Shown here: piece after piece, positions 16,942 through 58,652 of the stretch | How the letters are laid out: every line of letters starts with the position of its first letter | Position numbering within the stretch: position 1 is the stretch's first letter | Sequence record: MZ443769.1 | Length of the DNA: 64,000 nucleotides | Strand: one strand, 5' to 3' | Made by a program: the position numbers and the translations under genes | The notes under the pieces: generated by a model | What the model saw: only the letters and a program-made list of their open reading frames with translations | Told to the model about the DNA's origin: nothing | The model's database searches: none

Positions 16942-17206
16942 CTCTGTCCTCTAAAACGAATTGTAGTATACCCTCTACATTTACAGCCTTTAATCTCTTC
17001 GAGGTAGGCATAAGCATACCGTTGAGAAGGCCAAGCAAGTCTGCACTGTGGCAGTCAGGTGCAATCTGGTGAACGTAGATATCTTCGGGAATATCCTGAG
17101 GGTTAAGCTGCCAAGCAGTACGCAAGGCAGCACCCATGAAAGCAGGACGTTCCACCAAATGTCTGTTCAAGAAAGAACAAATGTCTTCGGCGGTTAGTGC
17201 TGTCAT
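16919..17206 (-). CDS. Hypothetical protein (95 aa)
   Basis: ATGA coupling to the polymerase stop. Confidence 0.65.
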   Translation of the reverse strand: MTALTAEDICSFLNRHLVERPAFMGAALRTAWQLNPQDIPEDIYVHQIAPDCHSADLLGLLNGMLMPTSKRLKAVNVEGILQFVLEDRDEDLPTA

Positions 17207-50254: not shown

Positions 50255-51547
50255 TTATTTAGAAGACTTCTTCTTCTTTTTCTTCTTAGGTTTTTCTTCG
50301 TCGTCTTCTTGTTGATCGCCGAATGAGACGTTCAACTGACCGCTATAAATCTGCGCCATCAATTCAGTCACAGTTGATTCCAACATGATATCGGCAGGCA
50401 CAGAAGTTGAGTTGAATGCAATCTCTGCATTAGCCAACGCTTTCTGCAAAAAGATCAAGCGTACTAAGTTCACACTGATCTTATCTTGCTTAACCATGTT
50501 CAGGAACATCTTGAGTCCAGCAGACTGCCACTTGTTTGTTTCGGCGTAATGACCGAGAACACCATGCAGCACCCAACGAGCTTTCACTACGATAGCACGA
50601 GGGTTGTTCGCTTCACGTAAGAACTGAATCACACCAATAAGATCCATCTCGTGGAATGCACCAATGACTTGAACAGCTTTGGCTTCCATTTCAATTTCAG
50701 GATCGGCTGCTGCAAGTTCTGCAACCAGCTTCTTATCGAAGTCTTCACCACCGAGCACGGACGAGTAAACGTTTTGCAACATCGAGATTGCACCACGCAT
50801 CTGACCACCAGCGTATTCAGCAATCTGGTGCATTGCTGCTTCTGCTTTCTCACGCGCTTTATCTTTCTTAGGCAGGATTTCGAGCTTGCCTGCGATTTCA
50901 ATCAAACGAGTGTGAATGATATCAGTCGGTACAGGTCTGATTGGAAGCTGAGTCATACGACCGACCATCGTACCTTTCATCTTCTCTGGGTTCGTCGTAA
51001 TGAAGATGAACACAACGTGAGCTGGCGGCTCTTCCGTAATCTTCAAGAACTTCGACTCTGCGGCACTGGACATTAAGTGGCATTCGTCGAGAATGAATAC
51101 ACGGCGTTTGAACAGCGCGTTACGAGATGCAGAGTCAACGATGTTCTGGCTACCGTCAACTTTACCTGCATCACCACCCATATCGTATTCTTGAATATCA
51201 GGATGTGAGTCAGGACCTGCATCAGCCATCTGACAGGAACGACATTTACCACATGCGCTGAACGTGTCGCAGTTGATGTACTTAGCAACCATACGACCGA
51301 ACGTTGTTTTGCCTGCGCCTGTGTGACCACTGATCAGAATAGTTGAGGGGATGACACCAGACTTCTTCCAGCCACGAAAGATTTTGACAATGTGATCTTG
51401 ACCAACATAGTCTTCAATACGACGTGGACGGAACTGAGCACCGAAGTTAATAGTCTTGAGTTCTACAACGTCCGTGCTCTTACTTTTCTTTGAAGGCTTA
51501 TCGTCACTGAATGCACGAGCCTTCTTTTTCTTTTCTACTTTCGCCAT
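50255..51547 (-). CDS. dnaX: Clamp-loader ATPase, DNA polymerase III gamma/tau-like
   Basis: FRPRRIEDYVGQ, GHTGAGKT, zinc CDTFSACGKCRSC, FILDECH, GGQMRGA; start MAKVEKK at 51547. Confidence 0.9.
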   Translation of the reverse strand: MAKVEKKKKARAFSDDKPSKKSKSTDVVELKTINFGAQFRPRRIEDYVGQDHIVKIFRGWKKSGVIPSTILISGHTGAGKTTFGRMVAKYINCDTFSACGKCRSCQMADAGPDSHPDIQEYDMGGDAGKVDGSQNIVDSASRNALFKRRVFILDECHLMSSAAESKFLKITEEPPAHVVFIFITTNPEKMKGTMVGRMTQLPIRPVPTDIIHTRLIEIAGKLEILPKKDKAREKAEAAMHQIAEYAGGQMRGAISMLQNVYSSVLGGEDFDKKLVAELAAADPEIEMEAKAVQVIGAFHEMDLIGVIQFLREANNPRAIVVKARWVLHGVLGHYAETNKWQSAGLKMFLNMVKQDKISVNLVRLIFLQKALANAEIAFNSTSVPADIMLESTVTELMAQIYSGQLNVSFGDQQEDDEEKPKKKKKKKSSK

Positions 51548-51582
51548 TTTAAATCGCCCTTTGATTTTGTCTCTACTCGCTA

Positions 51583-51591
51583 TATTTACAG
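51583..51591 (-). promoter_or_regulatory. CTGTAAATA motif upstream of dnaX
   Basis: Exact motif after a terminator. Confidence 0.7.
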
Positions 51592-51610
51592 TATTCGGCA
51601 GTGTACAGAC

Positions 51611-51648
51611 AAAAAGAAAGGACCACATCCCAAAGCGGGAGGGTCCTT
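51611..51648 (-). terminator. Probable terminator
   Basis: Minus strand AAGGACC..GGTCCTTTCTTTTT. Confidence 0.6.
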
Positions 51649-51701
51649 ATGATCGAGACATAAAATGGTGATAACAACTATCGGCAGTGGGCGCTGGCGA
51701 T

Positions 51702-51899
51702 TCAGGCAAAACTCAACTCCCAACGAGGTACAACTCGGGAGAAGGTTTTAAAGTGGCTTGGTGGATTTCGTTTGAGTTGAGCAACAGAGCGTTCAACTTC
51801 ATCATAGTCTTTGATATCACTCGCAACGGTGTGAGTGACGAACGTACCGTCAGCATGAATCAAATCAGCGACAACACGGTATCGTGGGATTCTAAACAT
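51702..51899 (-). CDS. Hypothetical protein (65 aa)
   Basis: Strong AGGAG SD; CTGTAAATA at 51941-51949. Confidence 0.7.
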   Translation of the reverse strand: MFRIPRYRVVADLIHADGTFVTHTVASDIKDYDEVERSVAQLKRNPPSHFKTFSRVVPRWELSFA

Positions 51900-51940
51900 G
51901 TATTCTCCTGCTATAAAAAATTCTCGTCGTTATTGAATTA

Positions 51941-51949
51941 TATTTACAG
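51941..51949 (-). promoter_or_regulatory. CTGTAAATA motif
   Basis: Exact motif 41 nt upstream of the start. Confidence 0.7.
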
Positions 51950-51989
51950 TTAAATCCAGTTCAAATCCTGAACTAAAGTAAGACTAATC

Positions 51990-52340
51990 TTAAACTCCAA
52001 TATGCTCTCGTAAAAACATATTGGAGTTAGCCCTCGACAGATGACGGTCTATCGAAGACTATCCCCCTGCACTCTTGTATGTACGTCAGTGCAGGAACGT
52101 TCGCGGTCTTATGCGCTATATCTCGCAGCAGGGTTGGCAGCAGGTAGCAGGGTCCCTCGCTGCATAGCGCGGCCGCACTTCGGCCATCAGTGTTACGCGG
52201 TGTTACGCGGTGTTACACTGAGCGGCCTTGACTCTTTGGCCGAGTCGGTACAAAAAAGTGTCTGGCCCACAATGAAGGCATGAAGCATTCGGGCCAGACC
52301 AAAACTTTCGAAGCAAACTCCTTATGCCTCGTTTTGTACA
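51990..52340 (-). ncRNA. Candidate structured non-coding RNA or origin-like locus
   Basis: No credible ORF; at least six inverted repeats of 5-12 bp, a 10-nt tandem repeat, and a CTAATTTTTAC motif at 52342-52352 pointing into it. Confidence 0.45.
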
Positions 52341-52344
52341 TGTA

Positions 52345-52352
52345 AAAATTAG
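52345..52352 (-). promoter_or_regulatory. CTAATTTT(TAC) motif with no downstream ORF
   Basis: CTAATTTTTACATG, the same 14-mer as before the H1-like gene. Confidence 0.6.
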
Positions 52353-52379
52353 AAACATCTCGCAATATTCAGACAATTC

Positions 52380-52967
52380 TTAGTCTAACATTGGAATAAA
52401 GTTTTCGAGGAAATGCTGGCGATCAAACGAGCTAATACGATGCGGATGATCGATGTGCGCGTTCCATGGTTGGGTGAACAGCAATACGTTCTTCGGAAGT
52501 GCTGATACATCTCCGACGCGAGTAAAGTTGTTCGTTACCTGAGTACGTGGGTTGTCGTCAATCAGGTAGTAACCGTCTTCACCGTGAATTGAATTCAAGA
52601 AAGCAATCTTATCAGGATGCTCTGCTGGATTCAGTACGTGAATGTGATCGAACATCGACAGGTGAGGAGCCAGAGCTTTGCGAGTATAACGTTCACCTTT
52701 CTCATGATAACCACGATGCGTACAAACACCGAGAGAGAATCCTTCACGCAACAGGAAAGAAAGCGTTTGAATGAAGTAATCATTCATGTCAACTTCTAAC
52801 ATGAAGCGACCGCTCTCCAGCAGATCAACGAAAGGCTTGCCACCAATCTCAGGAGTGATGTAGCGATCTTCGACCATGATGCCGTGGCCTTGCAGATGGA
52901 GATTCATGTACAAGTGAGTACGGAATCCCGTGTCATCTAAGTCAACGTAAATAGGTTTCAAGTCCAT
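52380..52967 (-). CDS. HAD-superfamily 5'(3')-deoxyribonucleotidase-like protein
   Basis: IYVDLDDT (DxD), VCTHRG, LIDDNP, LFTQPWN motifs. Confidence 0.8.
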   Translation of the reverse strand: MDLKPIYVDLDDTGFRTHLYMNLHLQGHGIMVEDRYITPEIGGKPFVDLLESGRFMLEVDMNDYFIQTLSFLLREGFSLGVCTHRGYHEKGERYTRKALAPHLSMFDHIHVLNPAEHPDKIAFLNSIHGEDGYYLIDDNPRTQVTNNFTRVGDVSALPKNVLLFTQPWNAHIDHPHRISSFDRQHFLENFIPMLD

Positions 52968-58281: not shown

Positions 58282-58652
58282 TTTTAACCTCAGAACAACT
58301 TTCTTGGTTGATCTTTACAGAATCTCTGGCTGATCATGGTATATACGCTGTATAAATGCTTGTTCTAGCAATTCTCTACCCAAAGTTGATATCAGGAGGA
58401 TATCTATCAGATAGGTTAGGTACAGCTTCATCTACATGCAGCTTGAGCGCACTATAGTCACACGAAATTCATACCATAGACCGATGAGGGAGCGTCCAAA
58501 AGTATTCATTAGGCGAGTAGTGATATGTCCAGAGGTGCGAAAGGGCTAAACCGTCTATAGGCGCCTTTTTTGGTGTCAATTCGGGATTTTCTCAATCTAA
58601 CGTATGCGTGATTAAATCCTTGCACCTCTGGAGCGATTCTGTAGGGAGTCGG

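Follow-up and report, generated by a model that had tools for sequence, protein, structure and literature searches.

Genes around the gap

The stretch of DNA analyzed here, a window of 64 kb, comes from the Erwinia jumbo phage pEp_SNUABM_52 (MZ443769, 261 kb, Sasquatchvirus Y3). Bases 51700-52600 are 100% identical to that phage and 97.8% identical to phage vB_EamM_Y3. Within this interval we found a gap of 480 nt, the largest unannotated or intergenic gap within the surrounding 42 kb, in a block of genes that run on the minus strand. The upstream neighbor (52380-52967, minus strand) encodes a HAD-superfamily phosphatase of 195 aa with the motif DLDDT near its N-terminus. This gene matches phrog_415 and phrog_16292 and has a homolog in JA13, and searches of Pfam, NCBIfam and PDB with its product returned no match. 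The downstream neighbor (51702-51899, minus strand) encodes a 65-aa protein of unassigned function, and 3′ of it lies the gene for the clamp loader of DNA polymerase (50255-51547). Salmondvirus lacks the 65-aa gene, yet the RNA described below is retained there. In the related phage phB78 an exonuclease is annotated a few genes beyond, and a single-strand-binding protein gene is annotated well away.

The families recognized among eight neighboring proteins were HAD/polynucleotide-kinase-like, clamp-loader and peptidase; no reverse transcriptase, RNA-guided nuclease or RNA-binding family was found among them. Retron msr-msd RNAs and IscB/TnpB guide RNAs were excluded as a class, since no reverse transcriptase or RNA-guided nuclease gene is adjacent. 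A link to RNA repair through the HAD gene, suggested by the polynucleotide kinase label of phrog_415, is weak: the protein carries the HAD signature DLDDT only and no P-loop motif is visible.

The gap had been described as ORF-free in a first-pass annotation of the window. Open reading frames can be drawn mechanically, one of 80 aa on the plus strand and others of 57, 50 and 31 aa on the minus strand, so that the description fails as worded. What holds is that no ORF keeps its position, frame or length among 17 relatives.

Elements of the gap in gene sense

Read on the minus strand, the gap contains a promoter-like box, a hairpin with a GGAG loop, a terminator-like hairpin and then about 260 nt of further hairpins that include a terminal core of 130 nt. 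To assess covariation across the whole gap, 17 sequences were aligned in gene sense with MAFFT. The inverted repeats picked out by the first-pass annotation were found where it had placed them: 51993-52004/52017-52028 (12 bp, 100% complementary), 52066-52073/52088-52095 (8 bp), 52113-52119/52164-52170 (7 bp) and 52260-52268/52291-52299 (9 bp), the last followed by TTTTTT at 52252-52257 on the minus strand. Two elements had escaped it: the pseudoknot helix formed by 52096-52101 with 52082-52088, and a hairpin of 12 bp at 52030-52059.

Both borders of the region carry the direct repeat AAGAWTNKTCTKA. The upstream copy (52369-52381, minus strand) begins at the last two bases of the HAD stop codon, includes a -35-like TTGTCT and is conserved across the main family. 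The downstream copy (51978-51991, minus strand) lies immediately 3′ of the last hairpin, Hd; it is conserved in the main family and missing from Rivsvirus and Salmondvirus. These are the only two occurrences of the pattern in 64 kb, where 0.08 would be expected by chance. We considered the target-site duplication of a mobile insert as the origin of this repeat and rejected it because Rivsvirus and Salmondvirus carry the RNA without the downstream copy. After Hd the order is the second AAGAWTNKTCTKA copy, the motif CTGTAAATATAAT and the ribosome-binding site of the 65-aa gene. CTGTAAATATAAT (51937-51949, minus strand) is a recurrent promoter-like motif before that gene and marks a boundary outside the RNA.

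The putative promoter-like element TTGTCT-N17-TCTAAT occupies 52348-52376 (minus strand). It is followed by hp1 (52309-52331, minus strand), a hairpin with a 7-bp stem and the loop UAAGGAGUU, in which 100% of alignment cells are paired and 3 of the 7 pairs show compensatory changes; an unbiased scan for stacked pairs also recovered this hairpin. Next comes the terminator-like element (52252-52301, minus strand), consisting of a hairpin at 52259-52301 and a U6 run at 52252-52257. Here 93.7% of cells are paired, 53 of them as G-U, and 8 of 15 pairs are compensatory.

Beyond the terminator-like element, the segments GACUC/GGCC/GAGUC/GGCC (52223-52246, minus strand) are a candidate small pseudoknot or junction. 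One pairing among them, 52230-52234 with 52242-52246 (GAGTC/GACTC), had been noted before and is visible in the letters and invariant across all relatives. Covariation is uninformative for these segments because all of their pairs are invariant, and a competing 7-bp pairing joins 52237-52243 with 52180-52186.

Hairpin Ha (52189-52219, minus strand) has the conserved loop ACACCGCG, with 92.5% of cells paired and 1 compensatory pair. A tandem repeat reported earlier was confirmed in its loop (52190-52216, period 10, 2.7 copies), as was an inverted repeat around it (52187-52203/52205-52221). The third copy of the 10-nt unit is missing in the 97.8%-identical Y3, which indicates a strain-level duplication inside a hairpin loop. 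The short hairpin Ha2 (52171-52185, minus strand; GGCCG...CGGCC) is weakly supported, with 92.9% of cells paired and zero compensatory changes. The long hairpin Hb (52113-52170, minus strand) has 96.2% of cells paired and compensatory changes in 9 of 14 pairs, and the conserved GCUACCUGC in its loop is retained in Rivsvirus.

A core of about 130 nt contains a predicted pseudoknot

The core (51992-52112, minus strand; ~130 nt) opens with the single-stranded motif RUAAGAC, which reads AUAAGAC here (52106-52112, minus strand). UAAGAC is identical in 24 of 24 core sequences from five genera. Then follows a segment (52067-52101, minus strand) that is predicted to be a classical H-type pseudoknot: its strands run in the order a, b, a′, b′, with helix a formed by 52096-52101/52082-52088 and helix b by 52089-52095/52067-52073, and both helices covary. 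Its loops measure ~1, ~1 and 7-10 nt, lengths that would permit coaxial stacking, and the third is A/U-rich. A purine run (52061-52066, minus strand) lies beside it and reads GGGGAG in most relatives and GGGGGA in pEp_SNUABM_52.

Two hairpins of 12 bp complete the core. Hc (52030-52059, minus strand) has the loop CCGUCA, with 91-97% of cells paired, 36 G-U cells and 4 to 7 compensatory pairs. In Hd (51992-52029, minus strand; ACUCCAAUA / UAUUGGAGU) 95-98% of cells are paired, and every genus keeps the sequence of the helix itself, with compensatory changes confined to its two ends.

Covariation and strand specificity

Folded as a minus-strand RNA of 360 nt, the region reaches -149 kcal/mol, against -107 ± 5 for shuffled sequences (z = -7.9). 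The core alone gave z = -7.6 on the minus strand versus -3.9 on the plus strand. For the whole gap RNAalifold predicted 107 pairs, 32 of them compensatory. Helix by helix, 92-100% of cells in the 17-sequence alignment are paired, compared with roughly 20-60% when the partner strand is slid by 1-3 columns. In this alignment compensatory changes fall in 5 of 7 pairs of pseudoknot helix b and in 4 of 11 pairs of Hc. When all pairs of columns were scanned without a model, hp1 and pseudoknot helix a were recovered and no further long-range helices appeared.

The paired columns hold 187 G-U cells versus 8 A-C cells. The fold therefore belongs to the minus, or gene, strand; its plus-strand counterpart would be disrupted. 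Conservation that preserves G-U pairs argues for selection on folding of the RNA rather than on the DNA.

The core was aligned separately. In a MAFFT alignment of 20 sequences with the pseudoknot included, 94.1% of cells are paired, versus 33-48% with slid partners; 13 of 35 pairs are compensatory, and the observed values were reached by 0 of 500 shuffles. With 24 sequences from five genera, in an alignment that is partly model-fitted, 92.5% of cells are paired and 19 of 35 pairs are compensatory. The values in the same alignment are 97% of cells and 5 of 6 pairs for helix b, and 83% and 3 of 5 pairs for helix a, which is outside the covariance model. Phylogenetic depth is small: the covariance model has an effective sequence number of 1.3. 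The slid-partner control and the changes across genera are stronger evidence than the column shuffles, which relatedness alone can beat.

Judged by these alignments, the gap specifies a structured non-coding RNA: its compensatory pairs exceed the controls, its G-U pairs are specific to one strand and it has no conserved ORF. The comparisons show, at the level of sequence, that it is conserved as an RNA fold in Sasquatchvirus, Alexandravirus, Snuvirus, Rivsvirus and Salmondvirus jumbo phages.

The RNA matches no described family

No match to Rfam 15 was found in the whole window at gathering thresholds. A permissive search of 51800-52500 (E up to 10) returned a chance snoRNA match only (E 6.2), and Rfam searches of five homologous loci found nothing over the RNA. 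ARAGORN found no tRNA or tmRNA gene in the window. The RNA thus matches no described RNA family. Nor did searches of the literature on these phages and on jumbo-phage non-coding RNAs, outside which the original Y3 paper lay, turn up a description of the element. An undescribed phage non-coding RNA had been among the readings offered by the first-pass annotation. That reading fits the conservation across several genera, the compensatory changes found in most helices among related phages, the strand-specific excess of G-U pairs and the absence of an Rfam match.

Mimicry of ribosomal RNA was also considered, using an E. coli rRNA operon for comparison. Two conserved loops resemble the 16S decoding center and one is complementary to helix 44. 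We dropped this idea as chance because the RNA has 8-12-nt matches to 16S and 23S over its whole length and in either sense, and these vary among homologs.

Distribution of the gap and of the core

Using sensitive blastn we found the gap matched over its full length in 48 phage records, which span Sasquatchvirus, Alexandravirus, Snuvirus and Dickeya phage AD1. The identity of 68-73% is about that of the flanking coding sequence. Gap size (466-485 nt) and neighboring genes are constant in every record.

The core is also present in Rivsvirus and Salmondvirus. A covariance model of the core, built without pseudoknot helix a, found exactly one copy in the window. It gave full-length matches in Rivsvirus (pEa_SNUABM_5, E ~1e-13, and a metagenome relative, E ~1e-11) and in the Salmondvirus phages JA13 and JA29 (E ~1e-7). 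By comparison, nhmmer recovered the Rivsvirus copies partially and none from Salmondvirus. The locus of PaBG, the nearest outgroup by clamp-loader similarity, shares the gene order but lacks the gap, and the covariance model found no match in it.

A scan of IMG/VR with a pattern of the core yielded 16 stretches with one match each, on jumbo-sized contigs except for one 72-kb fragment. A metagenome collection yielded two true members and chance matches, and among 185,579 bacterial and archaeal genomes no real match was found. Across the viral, metagenome and genome collections the scans thus returned the same phage clade and two chance matches in coding sequence. Since true pattern matches come from this clade alone and PaBG lacks the gap, the RNA appears to be limited to a single lineage of jumbo phages of Erwinia and Dickeya.

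Promoter-like and terminator-like elements

The TTGTCT-N17-TCTAAT block is nearly invariant in 17 phages and has a single match in the 64-kb window. A sigma-70 scan of the window, which required hexamers 16-18 bp apart and a -10 carrying A and T at positions 2 and 6, respectively, did not list it because TCTAAT lacks the A at position 2. The box is a putative promoter, possibly activator-dependent. A motif at 52339-52352, which is present, had led the first-pass annotation to speak of a late-type promoter. However, it does not recur in the window, with 5 loose matches versus 7.2 expected, and the motif that does recur before minus-strand starts is a different one, CTGTAAATAKA. The latter occurs seven times in the window against 1.8 expected, in each case on the minus strand and a few tens of bases before a putative start codon. 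Because the proposed motif is not recurrent and the -10 is atypical, the term late-type is unsupported.

The hairpin at 52259-52301 and its U6 run have the features of a Rho-independent terminator, and we assign them as one by prediction. The U-run is 6 to 12 nt long in relatives. A simple terminator scanner did not report this hairpin because its loop exceeds 8 nt.

The surroundings of the core differ between genera

The order of elements in Rivsvirus is that of pEp_SNUABM_52: a promoter-like motif, a GGAG hairpin, a terminator, a long variable region and the core. The Rivsvirus counterpart of hp1 retains the GGAG loop on a stem of wholly different sequence. In this genus the hairpin with the CCGUCA loop is placed 5′ of the core, and on the 3′ side of the core come two hairpins that exclude each other, with another ORF directly after them.

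The gap of Salmondvirus is only ~340 nt long, with a CTAATTT motif that overlaps the end of the HAD gene and a 5′ part of 90 nt before the core. On the 3′ side of the core are a UAAGGAGG sequence and a strong terminator (U9), then the promoter-like motif CTGTAAAT and the clamp loader gene. Lying between a promoter-like motif and a strong terminator, the Salmondvirus core looks like a discrete transcript of ~285 nt.

The module of GGAG hairpin and terminator is thus retained on opposite sides of the core, 5′ in one lineage and 3′ in another. What lies 3′ of the core also varies by genus, being the 65-aa gene with its promoter motif, a terminator and a promoter motif, or exclusive hairpins and another gene. 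No downstream expression platform is shared among the genera compared.

A partner-binding RNA as the preferred reading

The most likely reading is that of a new non-coding RNA, specific to phages, whose action would depend on binding a partner. Transcription would start at the promoter-like box just past the HAD gene, near 52341, and most transcripts would end at the U-run near 52252 to give a small RNA of ~90 nt. Read-through or antitermination would add ~260 nt, extending the RNA to ~51990. The terminator is upstream of the structured part in pEp_SNUABM_52, so the long form depends on this putative read-through. In Salmondvirus the core may instead be made as the ~285-nt transcript. A terminated form of ~90 nt and a longer read-through form had been proposed in the first-pass annotation, and two such forms would be consistent with everything that we tested.

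The core would serve as a self-contained platform that binds one specific partner, a protein being the likeliest candidate, and not as a switch for one downstream gene. We favor a partner-binding core because the unpaired UAAGAC is invariant and GGGGAG is kept, because Hd is conserved in its sequence and not in its pairing alone, and because the core persists while everything downstream changes. Taken as a whole, the proposal of a phage-specific locus on the minus strand that gives a short terminated RNA and a long form with a partner-binding core has, in our estimate, an even chance of being right.

Two groups of known systems resemble the first part of this RNA. Like CsrB/RsmB-type RNAs and terminator-ended small RNAs, the first 90 nt consist of a hairpin that exposes AAGGAG and a Rho-independent terminator with a U-tail. 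In contrast to sponge RNAs, which have many GGA-type loops, there is a single one here, and a long conserved structure follows the terminator. The placing of a conserved hairpin a short way behind the putative promoter and ahead of a terminator, past which further sequence would be expressed, recalls the processive antitermination RNAs HK022 put and lambda nut boxB. This likeness is positional only, and put RNAs differ in having two specific stem-loops.

Leader, origin and other explanations

The main rival is a cis-acting leader or attenuator, in which binding of a protein or small ligand would set transcription or translation into the 65-aa, clamp-loader and replication genes, and in which early transcripts from an upstream promoter or operon would meet the GGAG hairpin and terminator. 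Both the regulation by binding and the arrival of early transcripts from upstream we regard as unlikely, while worth weighing seriously. This reading is favored by the arrangement in Rivsvirus, where the core is succeeded by the two mutually exclusive hairpins and by the next ORF without an intervening promoter motif. The RNA also invariably precedes the clamp-loader block, the Salmondvirus core has a strong terminator behind it, and pseudoknotted leaders that control replication genes are known from gene 32 of phage T4. However, no expression platform is conserved between genera, and the main family has a separate promoter-like motif (CTGTAAATATA) between the RNA and the next gene. Its terminator lies 5′ of the conserved core, the reverse of the riboswitch order. 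A riboswitch in particular was rejected since what follows the core differs in each genus, the terminator of pEp_SNUABM_52 is upstream of the core and no riboswitch family matches.

The leader of T4 gene 32 mRNA contains an autoregulatory operator pseudoknot. The predicted pseudoknot described here resembles it in being of the classical H-type, with a first loop of one nucleotide and a longer last loop. Each lies in a non-coding stretch of a phage that precedes replication genes, with unstructured AU-rich sequence after it. In T4, though, there is one small pseudoknot in the gene's own leader, whereas here the pseudoknot lies within a 130-nt core of a multi-hairpin RNA of ~350 nt. A separate promoter motif precedes the next gene here, and the single-strand-binding protein gene of phB78 is distant.

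A bolder reading takes the core as the active center of a new class of large phage RNA, either a ribozyme or a high-affinity decoy or sensor for a host or phage factor, with the GGAG hairpin and terminator gating its stage-specific release. We consider this rather improbable. The factor that is sensed or decoyed could be, for example, a defense or replication protein.

A transcription-activated origin, at which the transcript would form a persistent RNA-DNA hybrid in the AT-rich sequence at ~51900-51990 and prime DNA synthesis, seems quite improbable. The locus does adjoin replication genes (the clamp loader, and in phB78 the exonuclease a few genes on), and an AT-rich segment follows the structure. 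ColE1 RNA II is likewise several hundred nucleotides long, and its folding matters. As with ColE1 RNA II and T4 oriF-oriG, a folded transcript of several hundred nucleotides, if made as proposed, would here adjoin replication functions and AT-rich downstream DNA. Against this, the first-pass suggestion of an origin or packaging site found no support, as cumulative GC skew has no inflection near 52 kb, although the skew is weak throughout. No iterons were seen, the sole direct repeat being the two-copy border motif. The AT-rich stretch doubles as the site where the next gene has its promoter and ribosome-binding sequences. A strong terminator parts the RNA from the downstream DNA in Salmondvirus, and no antisense partner was identified, which again is unlike ColE1 RNA II and oriF-oriG.

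That the core is itself a catalytic RNA, for instance an undescribed type of self-cleaving ribozyme with a role in processing the transcript, is very improbable. In its favor, the invariant unpaired UAAGAC and the GGGGAG run flank the compact pseudoknot, and the size and complexity of the RNA are high for a non-coding RNA of bacteria. However, no Rfam ribozyme family matched even at E up to 10, nothing in the sequence marks a cleavage site, and the helix order a, b, a′, b′ with two hairpins is unlike the architectures of HDV-like, twister, pistol, hatchet and glmS ribozymes.

Although inverted repeats are dense and mechanical ORFs exist in the window, a DNA-level element (a packaging site or cruciform) or a small coding sequence is barely credible: an asymmetry of 187 G-U to 8 A-C cells is expected of RNA and unlike DNA hairpins, the locus is internal in both the circular pEp_SNUABM_52 and the linear Y3 records, and the ORFs lack conservation of position, frame and length and meet a 10-nt indel between two near-identical phages. 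The origin, ribozyme, DNA-level and coding readings are each less likely than the non-coding RNA and leader readings.

Significance

Few long, intricately folded RNAs of bacteria and phages have invariant unpaired nucleotides, and those described earlier proved to be biochemically unusual. GOLLD and ROOL are long, intricately folded RNAs of phages and prophages whose function was obscure for years. The RNA described here is likewise unusually long, intricately folded and carried by phages. It differs in having no Rfam match, in being shorter (a 130-nt core and ~350 nt in total) and in its occurrence in one clade of Erwinia and Dickeya jumbo phages.

The RNA is common to no fewer than five genera of jumbo phages, whose hosts are the plant pathogens Erwinia and Dickeya and which are under development for biocontrol of fire blight and soft rot. 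The 130-nt core provides a defined experimental target, and the position of the GGAG-terminator module, 5′ or 3′ of the core by lineage, offers a natural experiment on the gating of expression. If the RNA should prove to be merely a stable leader or a small regulatory RNA, it would still correct the annotation of about 50 phage genomes. The annotation of one relative puts a probably spurious ORF inside the RNA region.

Conserved features of the RNA region and its borders

We found that the region of the proposed structured RNA is flanked by a direct repeat. One copy of the 13-nt motif AAGAWTNKTCTKA lies at each border on the minus strand, at 52369-52381 and 51978-51991. The motif occurs twice in 64 kb against an expectation of 0.08 occurrences, and both occurrences are placed precisely at the borders. 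Both copies are kept in the main family, the relatives aligned across the gap, while no copy 3' of the RNA was found in Rivsvirus or Salmondvirus, more distant genera that carry the core of the RNA. AAGAWTNKTCTKA is a candidate box to which a protein may bind.

The third copy of a 10-nt tandem repeat (52190-52216) is absent from phage Y3, which is 97.8% identical; this copy arose by recent duplication and makes the hairpin Ha loop larger. The U-run 3' of the terminator hairpin (columns 133-144 of the gap alignment A2, 52252-52257 in the window) ranges from 6 to 12 across phages and is never shorter than 6, with lengths of 12 in pEa_SNUABM_1, 11 in AD1 and 9 in pEa_SNUABM_2.

In Salmondvirus, the sequence UAAGGAGG and a strong terminator are found 3' of the core (2840-2880 of locus L041 and 2835-2872 of locus L042, from the Dickeya phages JA13 and JA29, respectively), whereas their counterparts in the window phage, the GGAG hairpin and its terminator, are located on the 5' side of the core. 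The homologous structured RNA region of pEa_SNUABM_5 (Rivsvirus) contains a 41-aa ORF annotated in GenBank on the reverse strand (1743-1868 of locus L040), which is probably a spurious call.

Neighboring genes and a recurrent promoter-like motif

The 195-aa protein encoded upstream of the RNA (52380-52967) matches a PHROG labelled polynucleotide kinase. The only signature in this protein is that of a HAD phosphatase, with DLDDT near the N-terminus and YLIDDN later. Many jumbo phages have homologs of it.

The motif CTGTAAATAKA recurs in the window at 16976, 29807, 38977, 44972, 51581, 51939 and 56632, always on the minus strand, a few tens of bases 5' of the putative start codons of minus-strand genes, which include those for the clamp loader and the 65-aa protein. 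The motif probably represents a promoter class of the window phage. Relatives of this phage have their own sigma factor in their annotation. The mechanical clamp-loader ORF (50255-51628, minus strand) begins with ATG at 51628 and encodes 457 aa, while the record places the start at 51547 (430 aa). Since the promoter-like motif at 51581-51591 falls within the longer ORF, the shorter annotated start is favored.

A second unannotated gap, at 58282-58652, measures 371 nt and ranks second by size in that part of the genome. Its minus strand folds only modestly better than shuffled sequences (z = -2.3). In phB78, a related phage, a gap at approximately the corresponding position is larger, at about 935 nt.
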